From Rebecca billardiae RCC1528 (lineage: Eukaryota > Protista > Haptophyta), in NCBI GenBank assembly GCA_965240325.2, contig OZ251223.1, positions 4,402,001 to 4,466,000 on the forward strand: a DNA stretch of 64,000 nucleotides. Reading direction: 5' to 3'. The position numbers were made by a program, and so were the translations under genes. The notes under the pieces were generated by a model. That model saw nothing but the letters and a program-made list of their open reading frames with translations. It was not told where the DNA came from and did no database searches. How positions within the stretch are numbered: position 1 is the first letter of the stretch; the number at the start of each line of letters is the position of its first letter. Shown here in pieces: positions 5,409 through 48,499 of the stretch.

Positions 5409-8113
5409 TTCAGCCGAGAGAGGTGGCATTGCCACCTCTCGCGCGAGTTGGGGAAACGTTGAGTTCCCGAGTTTTTACACGGGGCGGCAATTTCTGGCGC
5501 GCGCAATCTTCCGATTTTAAGGCGGTGGGTGGCGCCGCCGCCGTCGCGCTCTCGACGCGCGCGAGCTGCGCGCGCGCGGCGGCGGTTTTGGCCGCGCGGC
5601 ACTGGGCCGGCTGGGTCCGCACGGCCGAGGAGGCCACTCTTGCCGCGGTGGTCGTGGCGCGGGGACGTCCCCGCCGCTCGCCAACCTCCCGCGAGCGCCT
5701 CGCGCCGCCTCGCGCCGCCTTCACGCCATCTCCGCGCGCCAACTGCACGCTCTGGACGCCTCGGCGGCAGAGCCGCGCGCGGCGCGGTTGTGTGCCGTGT
5801 AGACTGGGCCCATGCGCGTCCGCTGTCGGTGCGCCCCGGCCACGCGCGCGCGCAGCCCAGACCTCTCGCCTCACGCGTCGCCGCCGAGCACGGCTGTGCA
5901 CCTCAGTCTGCCGTGGTGCCGCGCGCGCGGCCGAGCGAGCAGGCGACGCGTTGTGGAGCGTGTGACGCACGAGACGGGAAGGCGTCCGAGCGTCGGAGCC
6001 ACCGCTGACCGGCGGCGCGCACGCGATCGGCTTGAGCCATCGGCGCCGACGGCGCGCGCGCGCTGAGCCAGCTGAAGGCTTGTGCGCCATGGCACGGCAG
6101 CCGCCAATCGCGGCCTGCGGCCGTACTGTGCGGCAGGCGCGCTCGGTGCGGGCGCTTCGGGGCGTGGCCTCACGAGACCGGAGCCCCTGGAAGCGCGACG
6201 CCTATGAGCTCGCCCCGGCCTGAGTGAGCGCGCATCTGTCAGTGATCGGCACACGCAGCAGCACGGGGTGGCCGTCGTCATGAGCTCCGCGCTGAGCGCT
6301 CCCACGCTGGGTGTCGACCAGGCACAAAGAACAAGCGAGCATGCGCACTTTTGAAGTTCTCACCTGCATGGTGCGGCGCTAGGCGTGCACGGTCATGCTG
6401 GCGCATGCGAGACCATTCAGCAGGGCTGTGTGCGATGGCCGGCGGCGCAGGCGCCACGCGTGCGTGTGCGCTGTCTCCGTACCGGCGGAAGGCTGGGATA
6501 CCAGTATCCCACCCTTCACCTACGCTGACACCTTGAAAAGCTCGTGTCAGCCAGAAACGCGAGCTTCGAGCGCCGCGCGGCCAGGTAGCACGACCCACTA
6601 TTCAGCCCATGTAGTCGGATGACCTGAGCAGCAGTTGGCATCATCGCGCGTGGGCGCGCGCACACGCCACCTCGGGCCAACGTGAGAGTGCGTCGGGCGG
6701 GCGCGTGTGCGCACGAATCGAGTGTCAGCAGCAGCGCTCGCTCGCGCTCACCGAGGAGACATACTTGCTCGCTGGTCGTCTGGGTCAGCAGGCTACCAGC
6801 CGTGGTAGACGTTGCAGCAGATGGGATGGAAGGAGATACAGTCTCAAACTTCCTGGTAAGCAGTCGGTCTGCGCAGACGCGGCTGCTCCCGGCGCACAAG
6901 GACCGTGCGCCGTGAGAGAGAGAGCTGCCGTGGCGCGCCCACCTCGGAGTCAGCGGACCAGCAGCACTGCAACCATGGAACTGTGCGGTTCAACTGGAGG
7001 GTTACGACTTCTGACTGGTATAGTCACTCTCTCTGTCAATGGAAGCACGTGGCTGGCATCGGACAGACGCTCAGATGAAACGCGTTGAGGCAGGTGCGCG
7101 GCAGCATGCGAGTGCTCGCGTGCGTGCGCGCAAGAGCACACGGGCCAAGGTAAGTGCCGGGGGTCATACATCTACTCTTCACGCGGCGCCGTGCGGTGTG
7201 TCGTGGCGCGCTCAGCGCGGCCGTGTCAAGGCCATGGCTCATGACGACGGCCACCCCGTGCTGCTGCGTGTGCCGATCACTGACAGATGCGCGCTCACTC
7301 AGGCCGGGGCGAGCTCATATGCGTCGCGCTTCCAGGGGCTCCGGTCTCGTGAGGCCACGCCCCGAAGCACCCGCACCGAGCGCGCCTGCCGCACAGTACG
7401 GCCGCAGGCCGCGATTGGCGGCTGCCGTGCCATGGCGCACAAGCCTTCAGCTGGCTCAGCGCGCGCGCGCCGTCGGCGCCGATGGCTCAAGCCGATCGCG
7501 TGCGCGCCGCCGGTCAGCGGTGGCTCCGACGCTCGGACGCCTTCCCGTCCCGTGCGTCACACGCTCCACAACGCGTCGCCTGCTCGCTCGGCCGCGCGCG
7601 CGGCACCACGGCAGACTGAGGTGCACAGCCGTGCTCGGCGGCGACGCGTGAGGCGAGAGGTCTGGGCTGCGCGCGCGCGTGGCCGGGGCGCACCGACAGC
7701 GGACGCGCATGGGCCCAGTCTACACGGCACACAACCGCGCCGCGCGCGGCTCTGCCGCCGAGGCGTCCAGAGCGTGCAGTTGGCGCGCGGAGATGGCGTG
7801 AAGGCGGCGCGAGGCGGCGCGAGGCGCTCGCGGGAGGTTGGCGAGCGGCGGGGACGTCCCCGCGCCACGACCACCGCGGCAAGAGTGGCCTCCTCGGCCG
7901 TGCGGACCCAGCCGGCCCAGTGCCGCGCGGCCAAAACCGCCGCCGCGCGCGCGCAGCTCGCGCGCGTCGAGAGCGCGACGGCGGCGGCGCCACCCACCGC
8001 CTTAAAATCGGAAGATTGCGCGCGCCAGAAATTGCCGCCCCGTGTAAAAACTCGGGAACTCAACGTTTCCCCAACTCGCGCGAGAGGTGGCAATGCCACC
8101 TCTCTCGGCTGAA
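5409..8113. mobile_element. Fold-back element with ~890-bp terminal inverted repeats (5409-~6299 / ~7207-8113) and ~900-bp spacer
   Basis: The arms are reverse complements: ORF 5410-6090(-) is repeated at the end of ORF 7039-8112(+). I saw only 3 substitutions plus a ~15-nt indel near the inner end. GG flanks both sides. No transposase recognised. Confidence 0.85.
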
Positions 8114-8882
8114 GGTGGATACGGGTGATCTGGACAGTGGCCGACCCAACTCACGCGGAGGCCTCCCTTGGAGCATTGGGGTCGAAGGGGCGCCAGGGAC
8201 GGACTTCAGGGGGTCCCTGGAGTTCCGCCGCAGCGCGCTTTCTGCGCTGCGGGCCCGTCTCCGCGCGTGGCGGCCGCAATGGCACTGTCCAATTAGCCCC
8301 TGGCACTGGCTGAGGCATGGGAATCGAGCTCAGAGACGCGCGCGCGGAGGAAAAGCGTGTGCAGCGGCTCGGACGGTTGCTCTTGGACCTACCCACGCCA
8401 GCGCAACCGCGCCTTGCCTCGGAGTCCGCCCTTCCTGAGTCCGCGCACACGCCTTGCGGCTTGAAACGCTGGCGTTCGCCCTTGTGCGCGGGACTCACGA
8501 AACAAGGCGAAGGCGGCGAGAAGCGCGACCTGGCGCGTGCGCAGACGACGTCTCACGACCAGGTGAGTTCAGCGAACATCGTGCGCCGTCGTGGCGACCC
8601 GCCAGTGGGCGCTCGTGCTCGTTCGCCCACGAGCCCTCGCCACGAGGCCCGCCGCCCGCTGAGTGTCCAGATAGCCCCTGTGTCCAGTTAGCCCGTATCC
8701 ACCTGTAGATCAGTCCGTTGCGTCGTCCTCTGGGCTCGCCGTTGCTCTTTTCTGCCGCCTTTTCGTGATGAATCTGCGCGAATAGACCACAAAAGACAGC
8801 CTTGCCGTTGACGCTGAACTTCCGGTGAACTTCGTTCGTGACTTCGTGCGGTGAGCGGTCGTGCCGCCGTCGTGCGAGCTCA

Positions 8883-9533
8883 ATGGCAGATGTTGTGTCC
8901 ATGAAGGACGGCGGGGGGGAGAAGGAGTGCACGTGGCGGCACCAAACACTCTGGTGGGCAGGTGTGCTCGGCCTTCTCTGCTTTGTGACAGGCTGCATAC
9001 TGCTGCCCATCGGCGGACCCATGCTCGGCAGCGGCGCCGGCGCCGACCCAGCGGCCGATTTTGAAGAGCTCGGCCGCGCGTGCACGCTGACCGAGGTCAA
9101 GCACGTCCCGCGCGAGGGGCAGGAGGGGGGCGGAAAGAACCAGGCGCCGAAGACGGTATGCTATGACGCGTACTTCTACACCTTCACGTACGAGGGCCGC
9201 GCGTACGACGAGCGCAATCACGAGCGCAAGCGGTGCGATCGCCCATGCGGCGACTGCGGTGCTGCACTCGATCCAGACTTTGTGGAAGGAGAGGTGGTAG
9301 AGTGCTGGCGCGCCACAGCGCCGGTGAACCAGCGGGCGTACAAGTGCGGCAACCCGGGATGCTACAAGATTTACGAGCCTGCTGCCGAGCTCGCGGGCAC
9401 CATGCAGGTCGCGATCAGCCTGCTGGTCTCGGGCGCGGTGCTGCTCGTGTTTGGCGTGGGGTGTGTTGGCCTCGCGTACCACATGTATGTGCAGCTGCGT
9501 ACGGCGGGATACACGAAGCCTTGCTCGTGCTGA
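8883..9533 (+). CDS. Two-TM membrane protein with Cys-rich loop (216 aa)
   Basis: TM1 LWWAGVLGLLCFVTGCILLPIGG and TM2 VAISLLVSGAVLLVFGVGCVGLAY, with 8 Cys in the intervening loop. GC3-rich codons. Confidence 0.8.
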   Translation: MADVVSMKDGGGEKECTWRHQTLWWAGVLGLLCFVTGCILLPIGGPMLGSGAGADPAADFEELGRACTLTEVKHVPREGQEGGGKNQAPKTVCYDAYFYTFTYEGRAYDERNHERKRCDRPCGDCGAALDPDFVEGEVVECWRATAPVNQRAYKCGNPGCYKIYEPAAELAGTMQVAISLLVSGAVLLVFGVGCVGLAYHMYVQLRTAGYTKPCSC

Positions 9534-9566
9534 TCGTGCGCACAGGGACCACGATGCTGCTCGCTA

Positions 9567-10027
9567 CAGGCAATCGCGGGCAATAAGGAGCTGTCACTGT
9601 CAATAAGAAACTGGGGCTTGCTATCATTATCATCAATGCGGATCTGGCCTAGAAACTGCTAAGACTAGCGATTGGCTGGTTCGCTATACGCATAGTCACA
9701 CTAAGAAACCGGGACTACGTCGTCGCGGCTCAGACGCGAGTGGTCCGCCGAGGCGCAGTGCCCGTGTGGCGTGTCGGGGCCACGCAGCGCGCGGCCCGAC
9801 CGTACGAGTAGCTAGTGACACTCACCGCGTAGCCGCGTGGGCCGGCCGCAACTGAGTCCCCGCGGACTTCTCCGACCGTCCTGATGAGTAGTAGCTAGTG
9901 ATGACTGACTCGTCCTGGCCAGTGGCAGTGCGCACCGCCGCAGCATCCGTGCAACATCATGATGCCGCCAGATTTCAGCTCATCCAAAATATGGCCCAAT
10001 TGTTTTCTTCGGCTCGCCGGCCGGGCC
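9567..10027 (-). mobile_element. Degenerate one-ended copy of the TA-flanked MITE at 36735-45903 (opposite orientation)
   Basis: Starts TA|CAGGCAATCGCGGGCAATAAGGAGCTGTCAC, the reverse complement of 45873-45903, then aligns to the reverse complement of 37220-36908 with many small insertions. Confidence 0.85.
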
Positions 10028-10090
10028 AAAATATGATCTAGTATTCTTCTTCTTCTTATTATTATATATAGTATAAACGCTGCGTATATA

Positions 10091-10296
10091 TGTAGGGGGT
10101 CGCTCGGCCGCGGCGGCATCTGCCGTCGCCGCCGCGTGCCCCAGGCCGAGGCCGGTGCTCCATCCCGGCCCCGCTCCCGTAGGGGGGCAGGGCTGCGGGT
10201 GGCGCACTGTCTGACCTGGACGGAAGGCGCGGACGCATTCTATGTGTCTGTTGCACTCTGAGCCTGACGCTTGTCCGATGCTGCCACGTCGTCAAA
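10091..10296 (+). repeat. Longer copy of the (TA)n-associated short repeat
   Basis: 10128-10296 matches 155-321. Flanked by tatata upstream and tatatatatat downstream. The 5' boundary is inferred from the TA flank. Confidence 0.75.
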
Positions 10297-11485
10297 TATA
10301 TATATATCATTATATATGTGGTGGGTGGGTGAGTTAGAGTCGGCCACTCGAGCGACTTCGTGTCTGGCGAGGCAGATCGCGCCAGTGCGTGGCGCGAGGC
10401 AGATCGACGCTCGCCTGCCTCGGGAGCCGCTTAAGCGAGGGCAGCTAACTAAGCTAGTAAAGCCGCAGCCGCGAACTTCACGAAAGCCAAATAAATGTCT
10501 GCCGGGCGGCCCGCCGCCCGTTCTTGCGCACGGTGACAAGGGCGCGCGAGGGCGCTTCCTCACTATCTCGAAGACGGAAGAGCGCTGCGCGCGGCGTCGC
10601 GTTGGCGGCGGCAGCGGCGCTGCAGCCGGGTGCATCTTGCCCATTCTGCGTGGCGGCGTGCGCTCATCATTACCGGCCTCGGCCGCCACCATGCATGCCA
10701 TGCGCAGCGACCGGGCGTGTCGCCTTCTGGCTTCTTGACGGGCAGTGCACACGCCCTTGCAAGCGCACAGCCGTGACTAAGCAGTAAGTGAGTCATTCCG
10801 GGCGTGACACTAGCTGACTAGAGCCGAGCCACTTAATCGGGGCCCGGGCCGCATATTTCAGATCTCTCATCTAGGCCGTCAATCAGTGCCCATCTCGACG
10901 CGCCGACGTGACCGATCAGTGGGCGCGCACGCAACTGCACTAAGCGGTCATTGCCGCCAGTCCGCTCCGGCGCTGTTATTCGGAATCCTGACGAGGCTCG
11001 CTGGTGACTAGTCACTACGCGGGCCGCGGCCGATGGCCCGACTGTGGCTATGCGGATTCTCACTCTCGGGATTGCGCGCCATCTTAGCAGATGGCCCAGC
11101 GCCGGCGACTCACGCCGCGCACGGGCGAGCGCGCTTGCAGCAGTTGCCCATGTATGTCCCGACGTGCCTAGCTCGAGAGCGCCTCGAAACTCGCCCTGCT
11201 GCATGCGGGCCATTCGCGCAGCCTCCGGAGCGCGCGGCCGCCGCAGCCGGCCCCGGCGGCCCCGGGCGGGCCGAGTGCCGGGCCGGGCGTAATGCAACAG
11301 GCCTGCGCGGCGGAGAGAGGCGAGTGTGCGGGGCGAGAAGGGGCGGGGACGATCCCCTGTGCCTCCCGGTGCCATCCGGCCTGCGCGCGCGTGCGTGCGC
11401 TGAGGGCCGCGCGTCAGCCTGCGCGGCGCGCGTGGTGCGGGACCGCGACGTTGACGCTCTCAGAATTCCTAAATGCGTGAGTACT

Positions 11486-12591
11486 CAAGGGAGGTCCGGG
11501 CCGGGAGCTCCCAGCGAGCGGCCAGCGCGACATCACCTCAAGGTTTTTTCCTGAGCGCCGGGCGGCAGCGGCGGCGAGGGCGGTGCTCCGCTGGCGGGGC
11601 GCGCACGGGGCACGGCGCTGCGGGCGCGGATGTGCCCGCAGAGCCGGCGCGTGCGGACGGGCTGTTGCGGGAGAGCATCTGGCGCCCTCCTGCGCCGCGC
11701 GCATTGCGCCACGCCTCTTTCGCCTTGACTCAGGGCAGCGCGCACATGCGCGCCGCGTCAAGGCCAGCCTTGCCGCGCCGCAGCCGACCGCGCGCGCGCC
11801 GTGCGCGGCGTGGTCGGGAAGGAACGGGCGTGGCTGCCGGGCGAGATGGCGACATCACGTGCGCACGCCATGCCGCCCCGCCACGCCTTGACGAGCGTGT
11901 CGCCGGTCCGTTTGCACGCCTCTTCGAGTTGTCTCAAATGGTCTGCACGGCCTCGCGGTCGCGACCCTTGTCGGGACGATCATTGAGACACAGAACAGTG
12001 CCAGACGGGCACGCGGACTACTCTTACATGAATGTCCATCACCACGTGGCCATGTAGAAGTGCTGGGTGCGACGCTTTCCTCGCGCTGATGCACTTTCAT
12101 CATCTTTTTCGAGCTCAGGTCTGGCTTCAGGCACGGCAAGAAATCAGCACTCGTCAACAGCTGTGCGGATCCGTTATCGCGCCCTTTCGCGGCGCCGCGG
12201 GACGACATGGCGTGCGCACGTGATGTCGCCATCTCGCCCGGCAGCCGCGCCCGTTCCTTCCCGACCACGCCGCGCACGGCGCGCGTGCGGTCGGCTGCGG
12301 CGCGGCAAGGCTGGCCTTGACGCAGCGCGCATGTGCGCGCTGCCCTGAGTCAAGGCGAAAGAGGCGTGGCGCAATGCGCGCGGCGCAGGAGGGCGCCAGA
12401 TGCTCTCCCGCAACAGCCCGTCCGCACGCGCCGGCTCTGCGGACACATCCGCGCCCGCAGCGCCGTGCCCCGTGCGCGCCCCGCCAGCGGAGCACCGCCC
12501 TCGCCGCCGCTGCCGCCCGGCGCTCAGGAAAAACCTTGAGGTGATGTCGCGCTGGCCGCTCGCTGGGAGCTCCCGGCCCGGACCTCCCTTG
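11486..12591. mobile_element. Non-autonomous TIR (fold-back) transposon, CAAGGG termini, 7-bp TSD GAGTACT (P-superfamily-like)
   Basis: GAGTACT|CAAGGGAGGTCC ... GGACCTCCCTTG|GAGTACT (TSD 11479-11485 and 12592-12598). ~400-bp arms (11486-~11887 / ~12191-12591) with a handful of differences. Confidence 0.9.
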
Positions 12592-12865
12592 GAGTACTAG
12601 ATCAATAATGGGCCGGCTTTGTCCGCGCCCTACTATCATACCCCCATACCAAGACTATTTTCGTCCTCCCAATGGTCGTAAGATCGAGGGGGAATCTAGC
12701 CAAATTCATGGGTGCTGATCCGAACGGAATGCGTTCGCATGAGGCGGCTTATTAATCACAGCGCCCTTTTACCCAAGTGGTTGTGTGCCCGCCACGACCA
12801 GCGGATCACCATTCACCCCGAATCAACGTCGCTAGCGGGGTCCGCCGTACGCTAGAGCCAGGGCC

Positions 12866-26627: not shown

Positions 26628-28237
26628 GCCCGGCGCGCTCGCCGCCCTCGCCGGTGTGCCGCCCGGCGGGGCTCGGCGGCGAGGGCGCGCTCGCGCGGCT
26701 CTCGCTCGCGCGGCTGCAGCCGCCCTCGCCCTCGCCCCTCTCGCCGTGCCGCGTGCTCAACCTCCCCGCCTCGCCGCGCGACGGCGGCGGCGCGGCGCGC
26801 AGCCCAGCGGCGCGCGCGAGCGCGCTCGGCAGCGGCGCGCGCGCGGGCGGCGGCGGCAGCGCGCGCGAGAGCGGCGCCCATGGCGGCAGCCAGCCGTGCA
26901 GCCGGCCGTCGTGCCGCGGCTCGACGGGCGCCGGCTCGAGCGTCTCGCTCGCCTGGACCTCGCCGCGCGCCGCCTCGACGCCGCCCAGCTCGGCCGCCGT
27001 CAGCGCCGCCGGCCGCGCGCCGCCGCTTGAGGCGCGCGCCGGCGGCGCGGGCGGCGCGGGCGGCGCGGGCGGCGCGGCGTGGCTGCCACCGCCGCCCGCC
27101 GAGTCGGCCGGCGGCTCGATGCCCGCGTCGCCGCCCTGGCCGGCGCCGCCGCGGGCCGCCGACCGCGTCGTGCCGTGGCGCGCGCAGCCCGAGCGCGCGC
27201 GCCCCGCCGCCGCCGCCGCCGCCGCGCGCGGCCCGCGCGGCGCGGCGCCGCTGCCGCCGCGCGCGCCCGCGCCCGCGGCCACGGCCGCGGACGCTCGGCG
27301 CCGCTCGATCTCGGCGCCGCTCGGCCGGTGCGTGCCGTCGGCCAGCTCGCGCTTCGAGGCGCCGAGCGCGTCGCAGCTGCGCGCCGCGGGCATGCCGCCG
27401 TCCGCGCCGCCCTCGCCCGGCGCGCGCGCCGCGCGGCCGGCGGGGTGCGGAGGGTGCGGAGGAGCGCTCGGCGCGGCGGTGGCGGCGGCCGCGGACGGCG
27501 CGGCGCGCGGCGGCGACGACGAGGCCGCGTCCGTCGCCGCCGCCTCCGAGCTCACCGCCGCGACGCTCGCCAGCCTCCCCGCCCTCTCCGCGCCGCACGC
27601 GCACGGCCTCGACTCCGCCTCCGCCGCGCTCCTCCGCTACCGCTTCGTCCTCGCGGACCCGACGCTCTCGGGCGCGGTGCCGCGCGCGCAAGCCGAGGCG
27701 TTCCTCTCAGAGCTCGGCTTTGGCCGCGGCCTCGCGAGGCGCGCGTGCGCGGCGCTCGTCGGCGCGGACGGCGCCGTCTCGTTCGACGCGCTGTGCGGGT
27801 GGTACGCGGCGCGCGTCGACGCGGGCGCGCGCACGCACGCGGCGCGCGCCGCGCGCGCCGCGCGCTGGCGCGCGTCGGCGTGCGGCCGGCGCGCGGCGCG
27901 CGGTGCGCGGTGCTTTGGCGCGCGCACGCGCACGGCGCTGGCGTGGGCGCTGTGCGCGGGCACGCTCTTCGCGTGCTGCCTCTCCGCGCTCGCGTACGGC
28001 TACCGCTTCGGCCGCGCCAAGACGCGGCGCATGCTGCTCAGCTGGGGCCTCGCCGAGGTGCAGCGGCTCGCGCTGCTCGAGCCGGCGCTCACGCTCGGCC
28101 GCGCGGGCGCGGCGCGCGCCGCGCGGCGCACGGTGCACTTTGGCGCGTCCGTGGGCGACGCGATCAACCACGTGCTCGCGTCGGGCACCGGCCGCTGCCT
28201 GCAGGCCGTGCTCCGCGGCGCGCGCGGCGGGGCGTAG
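12866..28237 (+). CDS. Giant polycystin-1/REJ-like GPS receptor with extensin-like Ser-Pro stalk (5123 aa, single exon)
   Basis: N-terminal signal peptide, two near-identical ~175-aa globular domains and a ~2,450-aa SPn tract. Then a REJ-like region (FDASASADP, VVVNRPPHGGALAVAPAEGVAALTHF, DLPLSYAF) and GPS motif CRWWDE..W..DGC...CACSHL/TQF at ~24880-25015. Then a TM, IQ motif IQRYVRGLLARR and an EF-hand-like segment, ending in PKD1-like TMs YGYRFGRAKTRRMLLSW...LLEP. Confidence 0.85.
14171..21553 (+). repeat. ~7.4-kb coding minisatellite encoding (SPPP)n extensin-like tract; 51-nt/17-aa dominant unit in the distal half
   Basis: Unit ccgagcccgccgccgagcccgcctccttcgccgccacctgcgccgccgcca, e.g. 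at 18413 and 18464. Higher-order duplications, e.g. marker ccgaagccgccacc at 17561 and 18044. Confidence 0.97.
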
Positions 28238-28564
28238 CGCGGGCCGACGGTCCGGTCGGAGTCGGAGTCAGCTGTTCGGGCCGCGGATCGGCCCATCACG
28301 TCATGCGACATCGGCGCGCGTCCCGCGTCTGTAGTTTGTGACGGCTGCGCTGCTGCGTGCTGACGATGATCGATGCTACTGCTGATGATGCGCGCATACG
28401 CATGTCAAGGACGAGCGCAGCTGATGCGCGCGCGCTGCGCGTGGCGGTATATCGCACGCGCACTGCCGTGATGCATGCTGCGCTGATCCTCCAGACGACG
28501 CGATAAAAAGCGCATGCCGCCATGCTGAACGACAACGACAAAAAACGCGCGGCCGGGCAAAATG

Positions 28565-28637
28565 AGGTCCTACTTGGATTCGAACCAAGGTCTGGAGATT
28601 CAGAGTCTCCCGTGCTGACCAACTACACTATAAGACC
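28565..28637 (-). tRNA. trnQ-CUG: tRNA-Gln (anticodon CTG)
   Basis: Minus strand reads GGTCTTATAGTGTAGTTGGTCAGCACGGGAGACTCTGAATCTCCAGACCTTGGTTCGAATCCAAGTAGGACCT. It has an acceptor stem, anticodon stem GGAGA/TCTCC and T-loop GTTCGAATC. No encoded CCA; a TTTT Pol III terminator follows 2 nt later. Confidence 0.97.
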
Positions 28638-34065: not shown

Positions 34066-35071
34066 TGACTTGGGCGGCGCGCGCCGCGCGGGCGGGAGGG
34101 CTCGGACCCATGCGCGCCTTTGAGCGCCCGGCGACCGCGCGCGCATCGGCTTCCTCCGCCTGCAAGTCGCCCGCGCCCGCGGCGGCCGCCCGCTTCGAGG
34201 GGGTTGACTGCGCCCGAGTCTGCTCGCGGCCGAGCGCAGGGATGAGTTGAGCGCGGCGCGAGGCGGCGATCACGATCGGGCGATCGCATGCGCCCATCTG
34301 CGCCCTATTTGCCACGGCGTGACAGCTTCAGCGTGCGTATGTGACCCCACTTGTCAGGCATGTCGGGGAGCGGGCGAGCTCTGTCGGCCAGCGTGTCCGC
34401 CCGCGCCGCGTGCTCGAAGGGCTCTACGCGTCGGATGTCGCTCCGTGGCGTCTCGTGATGTCTTCGCTACGCAAGCTGGCGGGCACGGTTGGTCCGCATC
34501 CGTAGTCATGGGGACGTCCACTGATGCCGTGTGCACCACTGTGACAGAACTCAAGAAGCAACTTCTTCTCGACCAGAGTTGTCGTCAGCATTGACGCACG
34601 TTGCGAGCTGGCAGAGCAGTGGATGGCATGACCTTGGTGGCCCACGCGGGGCTGTACACGGCCATGGCCATGCACTGATGCCGGTTGTGACGTGTTTCCG
34701 CGTCGTATGGCCCTGTGCGCACGCGGCGCGGGCGGACACACTGGCCGACGGTGCTCGCCTGCTACCCGACATCCCTGACAAGTGGGGTGACATACGCACG
34801 CTGAAGCGGTCGCGCCGTGGCAGATGGGGCGCATATGGGCGCACACGATCGCCCGATCACGATCGCCGCCTCGCGCCGCGCTCGACTCATCCCTGCGCTC
34901 GGCGGCGAGCAGGCTCGGGCGCAGTCAACCCACTCGAAGCGGGCGGCGGTCGCGGCCGCGGGCGACTCGCAGGCGGAGGAAGCCGATGCGCGCGCGGTCG
35001 CCGGGCGCTCGAAGGCACGCATGGGCCCGAGCCACCTCGCCAGCGCGGCGCGCGCCGCCAACAGCAAGTCA
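34066..35071. mobile_element. Older fold-back element: diverged ~365-bp inverted arms (34066-~34430 / ~34700-35071)
   Basis: For example gcgcccggcgaccgcgcgcgcatcggcttcctccgcctg (~34124-34162) is the reverse complement of ~34970-35008. Frequent substitutions; no clear TSD. Confidence 0.8.
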
Positions 35072-35213: not shown

Positions 35214-35348
35214 GTGTCCGAACTAATCGCCTTTCTGGAACGGGTGGAAACTGTATCCGTACGCTGAACGCGGGCCGGGCGCTGACGACGCTCCGCGCTC
35301 GCCAGCGAGCCTGGACCGCGCGCAGCCAGTGGCGCGCGTCTCGGTCGC

Positions 35349-36470
35349 ATGCTCGTCGCGCAGCGCGCGGTCGAGACGGTCGAGGAGCTGAGCGCGGCGT
35401 CCTGCATCGCGTACGACGAGCCGAAGGAGATCGCGTGCTTCAGCCGCGCCGCCGACCGCTCGGTCGCGTACAACGACCGCTCGCAGCTGCGCGCGTTTGT
35501 GCGCGCGAGCGTGGGCGCGGACCTGAACAAGGGCTTCGACACGTTCGTGGACAAGGCGGCGGACGCGGGCGCGCCGCTCGGCGACGTGCTTGGCGCGCTG
35601 GCGCATAAGGGGCTGGACACCGACAGCGCGCACTTCGTCACCTACCGCAACAACCTGAACAAGCTGCTGCACGTGCCGTACAACGCGCGGGACGCGTGGG
35701 AGATTGGCGTCGAGCGGCGCGGCCGCACCGTGCACCTGCACGTGCTGCAGACGGAGGCGGAGCGCGCGCGCGAGGCGGGGCGGAGCGAGGCGGAGCGGCG
35801 CACCGCGTACTGGGGCTACGCCTTCGAGGCCGCCTCCACCGCCTCCGAGGCGGCGGGCGGCTCGGACGACGGCCCGCTCAACGCAAACGCAGAGTTCTGC
35901 TCGGTCGCGCGCACCAAGCTCGGCGGCAACCGGCTCGTGTTCGCGGCGGAGGTGGACGCGGAGCGCCGCGGCTTCGGCGAGGCGGGCGGGGGCGAGCGCG
36001 CGATGCGCCAGTACGTCGAGCTCAAGACGACCAAGCTCCTCGACGGCGAGCGCGAGCGGCACACGCTCGAGCGGCACAAGATGGCCAAGTGGTGGCTGCA
36101 GTCCTTCCTGCTCGGCGTGCGCACCGTCGTGTGCGGCTTCAGGGACGAGGGCGGCGTGCTGCGCAAGACGCAGGACTTCGAGACGAAGCAGCTGCCCAAG
36201 TTCGTCCGCGGCGCGTGGCACCCGCACGTCATGCTCAACTTCGGCGACGCCGCGCTCGGCTGGCTGTACGAGCGCGTGATCGCAGGCCCGCCCACCGGCA
36301 GGTACGTGCTGGCGTACGACCCGGCCGGGCGGCGGCTGCTGCTGCGGATAGCGCCGGCAGGCGTGCTGCCCGAGCCGACGCCGAGCGTGGGCGCGAAGCG
36401 CCCGCGTGACGACGAGGACGCCGCCGCCGAGGACGGCCAGGCGCGCGCCGGCGCGCCGGCCGCGGACTGA
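35349..36470 (+). CDS. DXO: Decapping/5'-3' exoribonuclease DXO/Rai1/Dom3Z family
   Basis: Conserved motifs EPKEIACFS, FVTYRNNLNKL, YWGYAFE, EFCSVARTKLG..LVFAAEVDA, YVELKT and KWWLQSFLLGV..VVCGFRD. Confidence 0.93.
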   Translation: MLVAQRAVETVEELSAASCIAYDEPKEIACFSRAADRSVAYNDRSQLRAFVRASVGADLNKGFDTFVDKAADAGAPLGDVLGALAHKGLDTDSAHFVTYRNNLNKLLHVPYNARDAWEIGVERRGRTVHLHVLQTEAERAREAGRSEAERRTAYWGYAFEAASTASEAAGGSDDGPLNANAEFCSVARTKLGGNRLVFAAEVDAERRGFGEAGGGERAMRQYVELKTTKLLDGERERHTLERHKMAKWWLQSFLLGVRTVVCGFRDEGGVLRKTQDFETKQLPKFVRGAWHPHVMLNFGDAALGWLYERVIAGPPTGRYVLAYDPAGRRLLLRIAPAGVLPEPTPSVGAKRPRDDEDAAAEDGQARAGAPAAD

Positions 36471-39199
36471 GAGTGGCCACCGCCAGTGACGACTCGTCAG
36501 CATGCCGATTCTTTCTGACCGAGTCGCACTGCTTGACTGCTGCTGTTACTATGTGACTGCTGCTGCGAGCGCAGAGCCTGGCACGCAGCTGCTGCGCGCG
36601 CATGCTATATACTCATATTATATAGCGTCGGGCCGGCCGGCCGGCCAGCCGCGGAGCCATAAGCCCGATTGATGACGACTACTTCAATATATTAAATACT
36701 ACGAGAAAGAATTATAGTGACGAATAATAAATTACAGCAGGCAATCGCGGGCAATAAGAAGTCAGAGATCTCACGGCTAGTAGTCTCGGTTTCTTAGCCG
36801 TTCGGTAGCCCGAGCGCCTACGGAGTCTTGCAGTTTCTTAGCGCTAGGTCCGCCCGCCGCGCAGGCGCGGGGGGCGGCAGGGGGGCTGAGCCCCCCGCTG
36901 AGTCTTAGGCCCGGCCGGCGAGGCCGAATAAAACTTTTGGGCCATTTTGGAGCAAATTTGGCATGATCTTGCATGGATGCTGCGGCGCACTGGCCAGGAG
37001 TCAGTCATCAGGAGAAGTCGGGACTTGGCCTGTACTCGTAGTCGGGCCGCGCGCCGCGTCCCACGGCGGCACTGCGCCTCGGCGGACCACTCGTGGCAGC
37101 CGCGACGACATCGGACATAGTCCTGGTTTCTTATAGTGTGACTATGCGTATAGCGAACCAGCCAATCGCTAGTCTCAGTTTCTAGGCCAGATCCGCAGAT
37201 AGCAAGCCCCAGTTGCTTAACGTTAGGTGGGTCCCTCCCAACTGGGGCGATGTTCTGGCGCACTCAGAATGGCGTCCTAGATTTCGTCTCTCACCCAGAA
37301 TCGACGCTATAAATGCGTCCCATCGGGGCGGAGCAAAAGTTTCGACCTCAAAACCTACTCCGCGTGCCGTCGCGCGGCCGAGCGCGCGCGCGCCGCGCCA
37401 CTAGTGTCACATAGAGATTTTGCGAAGCGTTACTTGATGGTTATGGTGGCTAGATGGCGACATGCGATCGGAATGACTTATTGGCAACCGTTGACACCCG
37501 ACCGAACCATTTTATGAAGCAAAGAGTGGGGCTCTATGCTGTGCGCGGATACCTCCAACAAACTACAGCAAGATCGAGCAGATTACCCACTTTGTATATA
37601 GCAAATTACCCGTATACAGAACGACGGTTACCCACTTTATATTGACCGTGGATGTGGCTCACTATATATTCAAATTCGTTCCGATATGTGGGTACGTTTG
37701 TTGGGTCATCGAATAGGCGCCGAGCGACGCGGACACAGGCAAACCGGGCCGCAACCGGACTGCCTGCGAGTGGCAGTGTTTGTGGCGGGCTGCGTGCCGA
37801 GGCACGCATCATCGCCCGCCACCGAGCATGCCACCGTCGTCACACGGGAGCCCTCCGCCGTCGAGGCTGGACTATCAGCCAACGCCACCGCCGGAGCTTG
37901 CCGCGCTCGGCGGCTTCCGTGCTCGTACTCCGCGTGTCACCGGTCGTCGTATGCCCACCCGCGTGAGGCCGCCACCAGTCCACGACTACCGCAGCTGCAG
38001 CCCATGCCGTCGACGATACCTCCTACAATCTTCTTGCCAGGCAGCAATACGATAGGTTCACCGACGCTGCTGCTAGGCTGAGAGCACTCAGCCAGTTGGC
38101 CGGCGAGACGTCAGATGGTTCATTGGTTGAGCTGCTGGCCTACAGTAGCCATCACTGAATGGCATCACGTTGCGGCTTCCGCTCGCTCAAGTACACCCAA
38201 CGTGACGACGAGAACGTGCCGGGCAATCATCAGACATGCGTCTGAGGGGTCTACCACGCCTAGCCGTAGATTTGCTGAGTACGAGTCTTCGCAGATAACA
38301 AGCGGAACGAGTGGGACCACCCGATGGCAGGAGCAACAGCGTGGGGTGGCACCCGCGCCTGTCAACGCGACCGCGTTCTGTCAAGAATGGACCCATATCC
38401 TGCGACCACGCTCGAGCACCGCATATTATGCCCACACTCGGCATAGGGAAGGATCGCTGAGCGCCTGCTGCCGCTGTCAAAGGCCCTGCTGATCTTCCTG
38501 GCGCTTGATCGTGCACACGGATGGCAAGTCAGCGTGCTCGATGCACATCGCGGCGGCTTCTCAGCATCCCAAGTCCTCAGTGCACCCATCCCAGGCCTGC
38601 TGGTCGATGATTGGTACCAACCCCCACCAAACACGCCCTCTCGGAAGTCGCCAATCGCTCACATGGCTCCCCGAGAGCCCGGGGCTGGCTGTCGTGCGTT
38701 CTCACGAGCAGCTTGCGCGCAGCCCAATTGTCACCTTCACGGTGCGTAGAGCTGCTCAAGATGGCGGGAGCGTCAAGAGTATGCACATGCCTGATGGTGA
38801 CCCATGCCTCCCGTCGCCTGACCCGCCTGTAGCGAAAAGTGACCCTGCTCGAAGGCACGGGTCGAACACCTGCCGATCGATTCAAGTTGTCTGTACGCGT
38901 CTAGCCGGGCGAGAGTCAAACATGCGGGCACGTGCCAGGCGGGGGATGTGTGACCACGGATCCCATCCGTGAGCACGCGCAAAGCGCTGGAGCGCGCGAT
39001 AGGTGTTGGCAGTAGTCTACCCGACACACGGCGGCTCGGTCGCGCTGGAGAGGCACTCCGACATCGTCGGGAGCGTTCAGATCGGACCTCGGCCGGCGGC
39101 CCGGCGATTTTCCCGAGCCGCGCCCCGCGCGAAAGAAATCCGGCCAGAGAACCCGGTAAATGTTTAAAAGACCGCTGGAAAATCGCCAGGGACCCACCT

Positions 39200-39536
39200 T
39201 GTCAAGATCCAACGTTACCCGGACTCGCTCTCCCGTGCGTACACACCCGGATCACCAACCGTCACACTACACCAGACTACACCGACATTCATTATCGAGT
39301 CGGGATCATACACGCGCCCATCATGGCCACTTTCCCGACTTACCCGTTGATGGCTATCAGTGCCTCCAGCACAGTCTTAGACGGCTCGGGATTCCTTCCT
39401 CGCCAGGGCAGTTCAGTTCCGTATCGCTTCACTGCACCTCGACTCTCGAGTCGAACTCCAGTCCCTCGGGGCATCCTCGCCCCCCTCGTCACGCTCTCGG
39501 GCCTCACGGCCCTGTCGCTCTCTTCACCCTTTGACA
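39200..39536 (+). repeat. 5' LTR
   Basis: TG...CA ends. Identical to the 3' LTR except for two compensating 7-nt indels near 39438-39460. Confidence 0.97.
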
Positions 39537-42500
39537 TGGCGGAGCCGCCGGGTGGCGACATGCGTGACCAGCTCCCGCCGCGAGCTCTCGTCCTCAAGCC
39601 GCAGGACCTCCGCACGGCCATCTCCGTTCTTGTGGTCATGGTCACGTCGAAGCCGGACATGGACGTCGCGCTCGCGTTCTCCAACCCGTCCTCGCCCCTC
39701 GAGCCGGGCAAGGACGATACCGGCGCGGACAAGCCCATCGTCTGCCCCCCGTCCACCGCCGCCGCCACCATCCAGGCCAAGCAGCTGCGCACGCAGGCTT
39801 TCATCGTGCAGTTGCTTCTCAAGGCGGTCGCTCCTCGCATCCTCGACCCGATCATCGCGCAGTTGCAGCACTCTGGTCTCGGGCTCGAGCTGTCTCATCT
39901 CGTCAACGCGCTCAACGTGCGCTGCAACAGCTCCCGCCCCTCCTCGCTCGTCGCCAAGCTGTACGCCCTGCTCTCGATCAAACTGTCGCCGAGCGAGAGC
40001 TTCCACGCCTTTGCTGCCCGCGTGATGTCCAACGCCACGGAGCTGCGCGGCGTCGAGATCAAGGACGACATCTTCACGCTCGTCGTGATCCTCGTGAACC
40101 TCTACGGCCGCAACCCGTCCTTCGTCAGCTCGGTGATCGCGACGATGAACGACCAGCCCATCTCGGTGGAGGATCTCATCGAGCGCGTGCACGATCTCGA
40201 CCGCGTCGCCGCCGCCGCCAACGGCACGAACCCCAACCGCCAGGCCGTCAACGCGCTCACCTCCAAGGGCCAGCCCGGCGCATCCATGCCTCCTACCCCG
40301 TGCAAGTACTGCGGCGGCATGCACTGGAACCGCGACTGCCCGAACCGCCCCCAGACGTCCACCTCGCGCTCCTCGGGCGCGACGCCCGCAGCCGACGCTC
40401 GCTCCGGCGGCGCGCGCCGCCCGACTCACAAGTCCAACAAGCTCCAGCGCGTGCCCTCCGCGCCCTCGCAGTCGCAGCCGCAGCCGACGCCGCAGCGGGC
40501 GAAGCCGTCGGCGACCACGACGCGCGTGCGGCTCATCCAGGACGGCACGCCGACGCTCAACGCCATCTCCATCTCGGGCTCGGCGTCAGGCCCCAACTCG
40601 CAGCCGGCGGCGACCGACGCCGACGCGCCGCCGCCGCCGCCCGCCAACTCGCAGCCGCCCGCCGACTCGCCGCTGTCGCGGGCGCGCTTCAACTCGCTGC
40701 CGACGCTCGTCCTCACGCCGTCGTCGCGGCAGCCCGCCGGCGCGCCGCCGCCGCCGCCGGCGCCCGCCAACTCGCCGCCGCCCGCCGACCCGCAGCTGTC
40801 GCGGGCGCACTCCAACTCGCAGCCGGCGCTCACCAACACGCCGCCGCTGCCGCCGCTTGCCGACTCGCAGCAGCCGGCGCTGTCGCTCATCGACCAGCAG
40901 CCGGCGCTCTACTCGCCGCCGCCGCCACTGTTCGACCCGCCGACGCAGGCCAGCTCGCCGCCGCCGCCCTTCGGCCCGCCGTCGCCGCCGACGCAGGTCG
41001 ACTCGCCGTCGCCGCCGGCGTCTGAGGCCGGCTCCCCGATCCAGCTCGCGACGGCGGCCGAGCTCGAGCGCGGCCAGAATGTGCTCATCATGGCGTTGCG
41101 CCAGTCCATCCGCAAGCCCGCCTCCTACGAGCCGTTCCACCTCAAGCCGTTCCGTCTCGCCAACCCCCCGGACGACCGCGACGACTCCGCCTCCGACTCG
41201 GCCTCGGAGACGGACGATGAGCTGCCGGACCTTGTCCCGTGCACTCCCTCGTCCACGACCTCGGCTTCGGACGCGGCCTCGGACACGTCCGACGACTGCC
41301 CCAGCCTGGACGACGTCTCCACCGCGGGCAACTACACCTACCCGCTCGGCCACCTCGGCCAGCTCGCCGGAGAGCCGCTCACGCTCAGCCCGTACGAGTT
41401 CCTCGCCGCAGCCGCCGCGGCCGAGGCCGAGATCCATCGCGCACGGTCTTTCGGTGACGCCGGCGCCTACATCGATGACCTGATCGTCCGGTACGAGCCG
41501 CCGCCGCCGCGGTTCAAGCACGAGGGTCGGCTCCGCGCGCTCTTCAAGTCCTCGCACGGTGCCTTCCTCTTCCTCGTCGCGCTCGCCGTCCTCGCCATCA
41601 TCTCGATCCTCACCGCGGTCACCTGCTGCGCCCGCACCGGCCCGCCCATCATCTGCGGCGTCTCCCGCTCGTTTGACCCGATCAACCCGACCTGCATCCA
41701 GCAGCCGTTGCTCGCCGATCCGGAGGAGATTGAGAACGTGCACTCGACGATCTCCTTCGCCATCGGCACGCCGTTCACAGGCGACATCGCCCAGGCGAGC
41801 ATCTCGATCATGATCGACACCGGCGCGGACACCACCATCGCCTCGACCGCGTTCTCTCGGTTTGCCGCCAAGTCCTTCCGCCAGTTCTCGGAGGCGCGCG
41901 CGGCGAACGGCACGCGGATCAAGATCAACACCTCGGCCTCGTTCGCCCTCGGCATGCGCTCGATCGACGGCGACCTCATCACGCTGCCGCTCATGGACGT
42001 CCCGCTCTCTCCAGACGTCCCGGGCTTCTACATGAGCGACACTTGGCTGACCCGCCTCGGCATCTCGTTCATCTCGCTCGCGGCGCCGACCACCTTCATG
42101 TCCGGCGCCACCCCGATCCACGCGCAGGGCGGCCGGTACCTGCTGTACGGCGACAAGCTCGTTCCTCTGCACGGCCGCGATCTCGCATGCGCCGTCTTCA
42201 TCCCGGACGACGACTCGCCGTCGCCCACCATCGCCGCGTCCGGCCTCCACGTGCCGCCCGCCCCGCTCCAGTCCTCGCTGCCGCCGCCGCCGGCGCAGCC
42301 GCCCACGCCCGACGGCGCTCTCGTCATCGTGACCATGGACCAGGCCTCGCAGACCGCCGACCTCGCGCCGGACGACGACACGTTCTGCGACGAGTGCTGC
42401 GTCGAGTTCAAGGACACCGACGAGCTCTCGCGCGTCGCTCACCTCCGGCTCGGCCACGCTCACGCAGCTGCCGTCAACCGCACGCTCGCCGCATCCAAGC

Positions 42501-45258
42501 ACCTCGGCGCGCGCAACCTCAAGTCGGACTGCTCGTGCGCGCTCGCCAAGATGAAGCGCAACTCGTTCACGTCCACGTCGCCCCGCTCGGAGAAGGCGTT
42601 CGTGCTCGTCCATGTCGACGTCGCCGGCTACGTCGACGGCAAGTTCATCGTGAGCCCGGACGATTTTGCCAAGTTCTACGTGATGGTGTTTGTCGACGAC
42701 TACACCCGGGCCGGCTTCATCTACTTCCTCGACCGCCGCTCGGACGCACCGGAGGCGATGCGACGCTTCATCGACGACATGTCGGTCTACGGCCACACCG
42801 TCAGCCGCTTCCGCGTCGACGGCGCCCCCGAGCTCAACTCGACCGACTGGGAGGGCATCTGCCGCGCCCACGGCATCGCCCCCAACCAGGTCACGCCGCC
42901 CGACACGCCGCAGCACAACCCGATCGCCGAGCGCTTCATCCAGACGCTCTTCAACGCGGCGCGCTCGATCCTGTTCCACTCCAAGCTGCGCATCGACGCC
43001 TACGCCAAGGACGCGCTGCGCCACGCCGCGTACATCATCCGCCGCATCGCCACGCCGGTGACGTTCGACAAGACGCCGTTCGAGCTGCTGCGCGGCTTCC
43101 CGCCAGATCTCGCTCAGCTGCGTGTCTTCGGCTGCGTCGCCTACGTCGTGCCGCCGAACACGCACTTCAAGAAGCTCGACCCGCGCGCCGTCATGGGCGT
43201 CTACGTCGGCCACGGCGACGACGGCCACATGGTGAACGTCCCGCCCAAGAACCGCACGCGCTACACGAAGGCGATCATCGTACGCGTGCCCGGCGACGGC
43301 CAGATCGTCCCGGACATGTTCATCATCTCGCACCACGTGCGCTTCGACGAGGACACGCTCTACGTCGACCACCCCGACGCCGCTCACATCGCGCGCGACC
43401 CGCTCGCCGCCGCGCCGCAGCTGCCGCCGACGTCGCCGCCGCTCGACCTCCATGCTGCCGATGTGGGTAATGGGGGAAGTTCCCACGGCGCCGTCCGGCG
43501 CCGCGATGGCGCTGGCGCATTCGGACACGCTGAGCGGGTGGGGGACGCACCGCACGCCTACGTCGGAGACGCTGACGACGACGCCGCCGGCGCCGAGGAC
43601 CCCCTCGATGTCGACAACGCGCTCAACGACGACGACCCGCCCTCATCTCGCACGCGCGCGCGCGCACACGTCAACTCGGTCGCGTCGCCGACTTACTCCA
43701 AGCTGCCGCGCATCTACGCGCTCCTGCTCGCCATCGGACTCTCGGACACGCCGACGGCGGTGCAAGCACTCAACGGCCCGCATGCGACGCAGTTCGCCGC
43801 CGCTCTCGACGCCGAGTACGCCTCCATCCTGGCCAACGACACGTGGGTGGAGGTGCGCCCGTGTTCAACATCAAGCGCGACAAGAAGGGCAACATCAAGC
43901 GGTTCAAGGCCCGCGTCGTGGGCAAGGGCTTCACGCAGATCGAGGGCATCGACTACGACGAGACCTTCTCCTCGGTCGTCCGCTACGAGACCCTCAAGAT
44001 GATCATCGCCATCGCCGCGGCCAAGCAGCGCCGCCTCTTCCACGGCGACTTCACGACGGCGTACCTCAACGCGCCGATCGACTACGAGATCTACCTCGAG
44101 CTGCCGCTCGGGTACAAGCCGAAGAAGAAGGGCGACGTCGTGCTGCGCCTCCTCAAGAGCCTCTACGGTCTCAAGCAGTCCGGCCGCAACTGGCGTCTCA
44201 TGATCGACGACTGGATGAAGGAGTACGGGTTCGCGCAGAGCCAGGCCGACCCGTGCCTCTATGTCCTCAACACGCAGTCGGGCATCATCGCCGTGTGCAT
44301 CTACGTGGACGACATGCTCATCCTCGACGACAGCGACGACCCGACCGCCTGCGACAACTTCATCTCGAAGATCACATCCTCGTACAAGATGACCATCACG
44401 GCCGACATCGACGGCTACCTGTCGGCCACGCTCACGCGATCCAAGGACGGCATCATGGTGACCGTCACCAAGAACATCCTCGAGCTCCTCGAGAAGACGG
44501 GCTTCATGAACTGCAACACGTCCGACACGCCGATGACCGAGGGCCTCAAGCTCGGCCCGTGCTCCGAGTCAGACGCGCTCGACGCGGAGACGACGACGTT
44601 CTTCCGCTCCGTGGTCGGCTCGCTCATCCACATCACGCAGTTTCGCCCGGACATCGCCTACGCCGTCGGCACGCTCACCCACTTCATGTCCAAGCCGGGC
44701 AAGAAGCACCTCGAGGCTGCCAAGCGCGTCATCCGCTACCTCGCCGGCACGCCGAACCACGGCCTCTTCTTCCGCTCGGGCTCGGACGTCATGCTCGTCG
44801 CGTACGTGGACGCCGACTACGCCAACGACCTCCACGACGAGCGCAAGTCTGTCACCGGCTACGTGATGCACCTCTGCGGCTCGACGGTGAGCGGCCGCCG
44901 CGAGAAGCAGCGCACGACGGCTCTGAGCTCGACCGAAGCTGAGTACATGGCCGTCACCTCCGCCGGCAAGGAGATCATCTTCATGCGCAAGCTGCTCACC
45001 GACCTCGGCTACCCGCAGCTCGCGCCGACCAAGCTCTTCGAGGACAACAAGGCGGTGGTGGACCTCACGGACAACGAGAAGTACCACAACCGCACCAAGC
45101 ACATCGACGTCCAGTACCACTGGAACCGTCAGCACGCCCGCGCCGGCACCTTCAAGCTCTTCTTGATCCCCGGCACCGAGAACCCGGCCGACATCATGAC
45201 CAAGCCGCTCGGCCCGGCCGCCTTCCTCAAACTTCGTGCTCAGATCCTGGGCATGTAA
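39536..45258 (+). pseudogene. Copia gag-pol polyprotein, frameshifted at ~43860 at the start of RT
   Basis: First frame: Zn knuckle CKYCGGMHWNRDC (40301), protease IMIDTGAD (41816), HLRLGH..CSC and integrase VHVDVAG/FVDDYTR/RVDGAPE/NPIAER. Other frame: KARVVGKGFTQIEGIDYDETFS, KSLYGLKQS, YVDD and RNase H DADYA..STEAEY..EDN..TKHIDV..ADIMTK. Confidence 0.92.
39537..39552 (+). promoter_or_regulatory. Primer binding site
   Basis: TGGCGGAGCCGCCGGG directly abuts the LTR and is complementary to a tRNA 3' end ...CCCGGCGGCUCCG-CCA. Confidence 0.8.
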
Positions 45259-45524
45259 GGCCTCGCCGCATACACGAAGTCCCAGTGCTACATCGGTCGC
45301 CGCTCGTCGGACGCACATTGACCTCACGCTGTCTCTTCTGAACGGAGACGCTGCCGGCACCGACTCGCCCGACTTCTACATCGTCTACTCGGACAACCGC
45401 TCCGACGCATGCATCCCATACGGCAACATCGCATCATCTACAATCACACGATGGTCACACGTCTACACCCAGTCCCTTCGGGTCGACCAGGTTTCGTACG
45501 ACCACCGCTGCGATTGGGTGGGGG

Positions 45525-45861
45525 TGTCAAGATCCAACGTTACCCGGACTCGCTCTCCCGTGCGTACACACCCGGATCACCAACCGTCACACTACACCAG
45601 ACTACACCGACATTCATTATCGAGTCGGGATCATACACGCGCCCATCATGGCCACTTTCCCGACTTACCCGTTGATGGCTATCAGTGCCTCCAGCACAGT
45701 CTTAGACGGCTCGGGATTCCTTCCTCGCCAGGGCAGTTCAGTTCCGTATCGCTTCACTGCACCTCGAGTCGAACTCGGAACTCCAGTCCCTCGGGGCATC
45801 CTCGCCCCCCTCGTCACGCTCTCGGGCCTCACGGCCCTGTCGCTCTCTTCACCCTTTGACA
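45525..45861 (+). repeat. 3' LTR (preceded by polypurine tract GGGTGGGGG)
   Basis: Direct repeat of 39200-39536. Confidence 0.97.
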
Positions 45862-46308
45862 CACCTATTAACGTGACAGCTCCTTATTGCCCGCGATTGC
45901 CTGTAGTCGCATCATCGATCCGACCACCTCCCAATAGGTTCAGACTCTATTTTTATTACTATATATATATAATTACCCGTCCCTTACTCAGATTTCAGCA
46001 GGCAGTCCGGGAGCGTTCCGGACACCTGTATACATATGCGAAAATGCTACCCGGGCTGGGTATTTAGTTATAGAAAATAGTAGAGTCAAAACCTATAATT
46101 GGAGGTGTGGCTGATGATCCATCTTAATGGCTGATCATCTGGCCGTCGTAATATCGTCCAAGGGACCGCCTGGGGTGGGCTCAGGGCTAGGCAATTGTAG
46201 ATCATCAGAGGCGGCGATCCCGCCGATTGCAGTGTCAAGATGTAACGCTCCACTGACCGGACTGGGGGGGGTGGATCGAAGCCGGAGCCAGCTGCTGTCA
46301 TCATATTC

Positions 46309-46428
<120 letters not shown>

Positions 46429-46855
46429 CTCTCGAGTCTCCGGCGCGCGCGAGTCAGCGCATCGTCACGGCATCAATATAATATGTCGATTATTATTGTC
46501 GTCGCCGATCCGAGCCGAGCCGAGTCATCAGCACCAGACTGGCAGTTGTCTGACAGTTGACTCACCCCGCGTCTCAGTCCGGGCTGCTCGGCGCGTCTGC
46601 CGGCGTCACCGAGTGGCGGCGGCACGGCCGGGCAGTATGCTGCGCTGCCCGGACGCATATATATCGGACGAGGAGACCTCGGCGCCGCGTCCGATGGACG
46701 ACCGATGGCGATGGCGATGCATGTCGGTACGTAATAATATTATATATATATAATATTGATTATACATGCCCGCGTGTCGTCGTGAACTGATCGCATGCGT
46801 AACTGTGACATCACGGATCATCAGCTGACGGCACTCCTACTCTGAGTCACTCAGA

Positions 46856-48049: not shown

Positions 48050-48232
48050 CGGTATCGCTCAGTCCTGCCGCTCGGGGACCAGCTGCGGGCGGAGGCCGAG
48101 ACGAGAGTGCGTGCCCGTTCGCCGTTCGCCGGATGGCTGGGTCCAGCGCCAAGCGGCAAACGCCGAACGCGCCGAAACTGGACGGCAGTCGGCACCATCG
48201 GCCGGCGCGGCGTGCCGAGCGGCTGCGCGGCG

Positions 48233-48499
48233 ATGGTGGAGCACAGCATGCCGCCCCTTCTCCTGCCAGCGGAATGCGTGCGCATCATCGCCGAGAAGGC
48301 CGACGGCGTGGTCACCCTCCGCGCCGTCTCGGAGCTGACCAAGAGCCACCGGGCAGCTGTCGCTGACGTGGGCGTGGTGAATTGCCGCCGCTGCTCGCAG
48401 CTGCGGCTGGACAGCGTGCAATGGGCGCGCACGTGCAGCTTCCACGGGTGTTCGGGCTGGACATGCGCTGCCGATATGACGCGGTACCTGGCATCATGA
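48233..48499 (+). CDS. Small F-box-like, Cys-rich protein (may be spliced or partial)
   Basis: LLLPAECVRIIAEKADGVVTLRAVSELTKSHRAAV resembles an F-box and is followed by CRRC..C...C....C. Divergent from 48049. Confidence 0.45.
   Translation: MVEHSMPPLLLPAECVRIIAEKADGVVTLRAVSELTKSHRAAVADVGVVNCRRCSQLRLDSVQWARTCSFHGCSGWTCAADMTRYLAS

Follow-up and report, generated by a model that had tools for sequence, protein, structure and literature searches.

Short insertions with the features of transposon footprints in gene-flanking DNA of Rebecca billardiae RCC1528

Genes and mobile elements of the window

The window analysed here is a stretch of 64,000 nucleotides from the haptophyte Rebecca billardiae RCC1528 (assembly GCA_965240325.2, contig OZ251223.1, positions 4,402,001 to 4,466,000 of the forward strand). 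It is GC-rich. Its DXO/RAI1 protein (35349-36470) is 64-70% identical to the closest homologs, with 64% for Diacronema lutheri and 67% for Pavlovales sp. CCMP2436, and its mannonate dehydratase likewise indicates Pavlovales. In other Pavlovales, the genes kept next to DXO come from a set of four, namely Rpl37ae, a DnaJ-domain gene, IleRS and PUF. Here the DNA directly flanking DXO contains transposons instead, suggesting that the DXO neighbourhood was reshuffled in this species. A tRNA-Gln(CTG) gene lies on the minus strand at 28564-28637; a tRNA-Ser call at 28042-28125 falls inside an ORF of 5123 aa and is probably spurious.

A non-autonomous TIR element (copy A, 9567-10027, plus strand) begins 33 nt 3' of the stop codon of the ORF at 8901-9533 (gene product P0037 on record). 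Its TIR is 5'-CAGGCAATCGCGGGCAATAAG, with TA just before it. The right part and the right TIR of copy A are absent, and similarity to the sister copy fades at about 10027. The sister, copy B, is a complete minus-strand element running from 45903 to 36735 with TA on either end. It is longer than the 36908-37019 recognised in an earlier note on this DNA, and it is split in two by another element, X: the body and the right TIR, whose tip bears a duplicated CAG, occupy 36735-37223 (TA at 36733-36734), and the left end with the left TIR occupies 45868-45903 (TA at 45904-45905). The TA flanks and a TIR starting with 5'-CAG are those of a Tc1/mariner-like MITE, and copies A and B form one TA-flanked TIR element family, also designated CAGGCAATCG. 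When metagenome and viral contigs were searched for a third copy, the TIR pattern gave 0 matches and the core pattern one match of 21 nt, a chance hit in coding-like DNA that is unrelated. A sequence of about 190 nt, bounded by TA repeats, is present twice (155-343 and 10128-10317, 98% alike); its second copy lies about 100 nt past copy A and may be linked to the lost right end of copy A.

Two resident elements of the window carry a 7-bp TSD. Element X (37224-45867), which lies inside the sister copy, has the TIR TAGGTGGGTCCCT and the TSD ttaacgt (37217-37223 and 45868-45874). About 2 kb of it is its own sequence, which has no Pfam match. A young Copia-like element (39200-45861, with an integrase match and the TSD cacct) is inserted in the right TIR of X, a few bases from the tip. 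The second is a foldback element (11486-12591) with the TIR CAAGGGAGG and the TSD gagtact (11479-11485 and 12592-12598). It is one of four foldback elements with arms of 340-880 nt, the others lying at 5410-8112 (apparent TSD aggt), 34073-35059 and 61164-62746 (apparent TSD taaa/ttaaaa). An element of 3.5 kb at 53912-57437, with the ends CACAGCAACG...CGTTGCTGTG, sits in a TA microsatellite; its flanks are compatible with a 5-bp TSD (atata), its ends resemble Transib ends or the RAG heptamer, and it contains a long GC-rich repeat ORF without Pfam match. Overall, element ends in the window are compatible with 2-, 4-, 5- and 6-bp duplications as well. A Pfam search of X and of the elements at 11486, 5410, 61164 and 53912-57437 gave no transposase match, and the stop-free stretches of X and of the 11486 foldback, where a hAT transposase would show BED, a DDE/RNase H fold and hATC, gave no Pfam match of any kind. 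Both elements look non-autonomous, with no partner in the window.

Insertions in the two copies and in a pair of LTRs

The earlier note had counted 10 insertions, about 6 substitutions and 1 deletion in copy A relative to its sister. Global alignment of 9865-10027 (163 nt) with the reverse complement of 36908-37019 (112 nt) confirmed these figures (+52/-1 nt, 6 substitutions). All ten blocks were found again (8, 17, 3, 6, 5, 3, 3, 2, 3 and 2 nt, 52 nt together); the 8-nt and 17-nt blocks are nested and comprise 2 and 4 events, respectively, when the sequence is read by eye. The inserts ascribed to the sister (cag-cag, ta-ta and atgtc-cg-atgtc) are present in copy B. The full element was then compared by aligning 9562-10032 with copy B, from which the nested inserts had been cut out in silico. 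This gave 330 matches and, depending on the scoring, 8-13 mismatches, about 9 of them inside the element. Copy A has 128 additional nt in 21 gap blocks and copy B 15 in 8 blocks (at least 29 gaps), with the polarity of the insertions read from the two copies. The load is uneven, with 99 of the 128 additional nt of copy A sitting opposite 120 nt of copy B. The hot zone of copy A (9750-9995, plus strand) holds nested perfect duplications of 2-3 nt and events of duplication plus filler. The majority of copy A events are 2-4 nt long, and many are perfect duplications.

Longer inserts have a recurrent form. In copy A, the scar c-CAGTG-g-CAGTG-c (9919-9931, plus strand) is a +6 event with the inferred target CCAGTGC and is not in copy B; c-CGTGT-gg-CGTGT-c (9762-9775, plus strand) is a hairpin-type scar of a 7-bp TSD with the inferred target CCGTGTC. 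A scar of the same type in copy B, c-GACAT-cg-GACAT-a on the plus strand at 37106-37119 (atgtc-cg-atgtc on the minus strand), is not in copy A. The two LTRs of the Copia-like element (330 nt) differ by 0 substitutions and two +7 scars; leaving out a 7-nt block per LTR makes them identical. The scar in the 5' LTR is c-CTCGA-ct-CTCGA-g (39437-39450, plus strand; inferred target CCTCGAG) and that in the 3' LTR is c-GAACTC-g-GAACTC-c (45770-45784, plus strand). Measured along the LTR, the two lie 8 nt apart, at offsets 238 and 246, possibly a target hot spot.

During hAT excision, the flanks are closed as hairpins and the joint becomes palindromic around the complement of the element-adjacent base (PMC5873905); flank hairpins are common to hAT, MULE, Transib and RAG (PMC5499845). 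A 7-bp target N1..N7 then predicts a 5-nt repeat with 1-2 nt of filler composed of comp(N7), comp(N6), comp(N2) or comp(N1). Four fitting inserts had prompted the tests of this rule, namely gcagtg of copy A, atgtc-cg of copy B and both LTR blocks. A single-event hairpin model accounts fully for 9 of the 13 isolated polarised fillers, against 2.8 by chance (P~1e-4), and the other 4 do not fit a single event. Without the four prompting cases, 5 of 9 fit against 1.6 expected (P=0.006). Probabilities for polarised events were calculated with all four bases taken as equally frequent, and the events were picked by eye. Several inserts of 2-4 nt also obey the complement rule; in the +4 insert cgcg (about 9860), all four letters are accounted for by a 2-bp target and a pair of arms of 2 nt each (chance 0.02). 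No strong consensus was found among 23 inferred target 7-mers, which show a mild C...G lean only.

The title of the earlier note extended insertion-dominated change to all non-coding DNA and called the process pervasive. The foldback arms contradict this. The arms at 34073/35059 differ by 31 substitutions (19 of them transitions) and 0 gaps in 341 nt, those at 5410/8112 by 3 substitutions and 0 gaps, and those at 11487/12591 by 6-8 substitutions and a single 1-nt homopolymer gap. Insertion-dominated change is thus real yet regional, the signal being absent from foldback arms and transposon bodies. We infer that the contrast with the foldback arms reflects accessibility.

Duplication-plus-filler motifs counted without alignment

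The intergenic DNA of the window (15.9 kb, partition drawn by hand) was searched for motifs of a 5-nt repeat around a 2-nt filler (5+2+5), and the counts were compared with 300 shuffles preserving 3-, 5- or 6-mers. Motifs on the hAT rule numbered 21, where 3.4-4.1 were expected and the highest count in any shuffle was 10; off-rule motifs were at expectation (10 versus 10.1). The on-rule share was thus 21/31, where the null predicts 0.26-0.30 (P 1e-6 to 1e-5, binomial). The commonest on-rule subclass is the both-apex type (12/21, classes overlapping). When the complement was replaced by two control letter-mappings, observed and expected counts were 3/2.4 and 7/2.5. Duplications with on-rule filler are in excess at period 7 (28 versus 6.6) and period 8 (13 versus 2.2), and no excess of duplication plus filler was seen at periods 4 and 5. 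Comparing insert-length peaks with the TSDs of resident transposons, as the earlier note had proposed, matched the peak at 5-nt repeats to the 7-bp TSDs gagtact and ttaacgt. Scars of +6 and +7 that obey the hairpin-apex rule are common in intergenic DNA, and polarised examples occur in both copies and in both LTRs.

Transposon bodies contained 4 on-rule motifs against 4.0 expected. Genes contained 19 against 9.8, an excess due largely to a single GC-rich repeat (54726-55925) within the transposon-like element at 53912-57437. After reclassification of part of this element, the 5+2+5 subclass alone exceeds expectation by at least 1.2 motifs per kb in host intergenic DNA. Scars occur in ordinary DNA beside genes and show no enrichment within transposon bodies, which leaves the suggestion that the process could inactivate repeats, taken as a defence, unsupported. 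Among +6 events with one filler base, observed and expected counts were 22/7.8 for the complement, 18/7.5 for the transition and 13/7.5 for the other base; this excess is not rule-specific and is probably confounded by 3-periodic sequence. Palindromes showed no excess at spacer 0 or 1 and a modest, non-specific one at spacers 2-3. Two other footprint types were counted and rejected. The RAG/Transib type, which keeps the whole TSD and has a palindrome centred between bases, was seen 0 times at a 5-nt repeat against 2.0-2.2 expected, and the Tc1/mariner type TA-CAG/CTG-TA (TA-CWG-TA) once against 0.6, which is no enrichment.

The differences could also be microhomology-mediated deletions in copy B, or assembly errors, instead of insertions in copy A. 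The comparison involves two copies without an outgroup, and, to judge by the subterminal repeats of the element, copy B may have lost part of the CTA by which the two differ at about 9659. The short-read unitigs used here break off at the repeated TIR (ending at 9591) and therefore do not reach the interior of copy A. Nevertheless, neither deletion nor sequencing error can produce the complement rule, and the alignment-free excess is independent of polarity. Logan short-read unitigs were 100% identical to the window over 46399-53929, 35219-36767 and 8680-9591, so the assembly is accurate wherever comparison was possible; the first of these matches, 7.5 kb from an independent short-read source, spans seven scars, all at 100%. 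We therefore regard deletion or assembly error as highly improbable.

Ordinary short-insertion mutagenesis would require no transposon visit. Slippage, fill-in of staggered breaks and end-joining with filler would act strongly but locally in simple gene-flanking DNA. Short insertions are mostly tandem duplications in human and rice, and the inserts described here likewise re-copy adjacent bases. The short length of most copy A events and their many perfect duplications agree with this explanation, as does the excess of perfect intergenic tandems (3-bp, 280 versus 174; 6-bp, 27 versus 6), of which the most enriched 3-nt classes are ATC (46 versus 17) and AAT (13 versus 3). Perfect 3- and 6-nt tandems have no diagnostic filler and are raised in genes and transposon bodies too. 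TGA/TCA and TAA/TTA, which belong to the ATC and AAT classes, are the kind of target used by elements with a 3-bp TSD, and these tandems could be scars of short-TSD families or products of slippage. Ordinary mutagenesis probably explains part of the 2-3-nt class. However, inserts of this origin should become steadily rarer with length and have a filler unrelated to the flanking base, and neither a 7-bp peak nor complement filler is expected from the tandem-duplication bias known in human and rice. In the data, duplication plus filler is not in excess at periods 4-5 but rises sharply at 7-8, and the 5+2+5 excess falls entirely on the complement rule. Slippage or staggered-break duplication was accordingly rejected for the 7-8-nt class, and we consider ordinary mutagenesis unlikely as the general explanation.

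Proposed origin of the scars and related systems

In our view, most of the inserts are likely to be footprints left where cut-and-paste DNA transposons entered gene-flanking DNA and then departed. Integration would duplicate a 7-bp target N1..N7, as it has for the two resident elements. Excision would then nick one base into either flank, and each flank would be sealed as a hairpin with the complement of the terminal TSD base at its apex; both steps are modelled on established hAT chemistry. Host enzymes would open the hairpins and join the ends. The predicted product reads N1..N6, then either comp(N7) with or without comp(N6) after it or comp(N1) with or without comp(N2) before it, then N2..N7, a form for which the motif statistics argue. 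It would appear as a +6 or +7 insertion, that is, a 5-nt repeat with complementary filler, and smaller excesses fit TSDs of 8 and 9 bp. Repeated visits to one accessible stretch may have produced nested scars such as those of copy A. The inserts of 2-4 nt, the majority by count, are probably a mix of short-TSD footprints with ordinary slippage and end-joining.

The responsible transposase was not found in the window. The assignment of X and the 11486 foldback to hAT is not established, given that no enzyme was found and that their TSDs measure 7 bp where the canonical hAT TSD measures 8 bp, though the scars behave in a hAT-like manner. For the 6-8-nt class, the complement rule, the 7-bp peak and the resident elements with a 7-bp TSD support one of the two origins offered in the earlier note, insertion-excision cycling with TIR-transposon footprints. 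The other, an undescribed "stutter" mutator, is superfluous for that class, since it gives no reason to expect the complement rule or the lack of an excess at periods 4-5; for perfect 2-3-nt duplications it stays a possible source.

A true stutter mutator might take the form of a host or domesticated nuclease, for example a cargo-free hAT-like transposase, that cuts open chromatin with a 7-nt stagger and leaves hairpin ends, no element having been inserted at any time. The high density of scars, at least 1.2 per kb for one subclass, would suit such an enzyme, as would two LTRs struck within 8 nt of the same position, and the single assembly offers no pair of filled and empty loci. However, the duplication requires strand transfer and fill-in, and the apex complement requires cleavage at a transposon end; we know of no single cargo-free reaction that yields both. 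Filled sites with a 7-bp TSD also exist in the same DNA. We judge a cargo-free nuclease to be quite improbable and retain transposon visits as the preferred origin. A much broader proposal would make hit-and-run cycling of hairpin-forming transposons, those with a 7-bp TSD foremost and short-TSD ones too, the leading cause of mutation in accessible non-coding DNA throughout the genome, exceeding point mutation, biased towards net insertion and targeted to open chromatin. We put this forward tentatively and with some doubt. If it were true, the scars would be a fossil record, readable without alignment, of earlier transposon traffic and of chromatin access.

Footprints of the hAT elements Ac/Ds, Tam3 and Hermes resemble these scars in their partial target duplication and short palindromic filler on the complement of the element-adjacent base (PMC5873905). 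In contrast, the target is 7 bp here and 8 bp there, and a background of at least 1.2 per intergenic kb with nested stacks stands against single reporter loci. The hAT7 families of rust fungi are hAT-type elements that share the 7-bp TSD, in another host lineage, and the available text of that report describes no hAT7 footprints (PMC12730594). According to the same text, a 7-bp TSD also occurs in non-hAT families such as Kyakuja (PMC12730594). Visits of non-autonomous DNA transposons to gene-proximal DNA are documented in rice and other grasses, where excision creates diversity, as proposed here; between two rice species, about 4,000 transposons are polymorphic genome-wide, and excision leaves deletions, foreign filler and flanking SNPs (PMC4423477, PMC5023962). 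The scars described here differ in being short, net-positive, stereotyped and locally more numerous than substitutions, a comparison whose time scales are not like-for-like.

The footprint type is already known, and its kilobase-scale density, locally exceeding substitutions, appears to be the new part. A literature search of incomplete coverage found no report of stereotyped scars at such density and none of footprint-dominated divergence in any alga. The old idea that transposon visits supply much of the small-scale diversity near genes has so far been backed mostly at single loci or for a minor share of divergence. Scars that can be counted from one sequence without alignment make this idea directly testable and give a readout of vanished insertions and of DNA that was once accessible. 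Dating repeats or estimating neutral rates from substitutions would mislead in such genomes, as the LTR pair with two scars and no substitution illustrates.

The motif count was also applied to two relatives. At the Diacronema lutheri locus, just 1.5 kb of intergenic DNA held 1 on-rule motif against 0.5 expected. In Pavlovales sp. CCMP2436, 5 on-rule motifs were found in 8.9 kb of intergenic DNA against 1.3-1.5 expected, with an on-rule fraction that is not significant (P 0.11-0.16); this excess is suggestive of a weak echo of the same scars.
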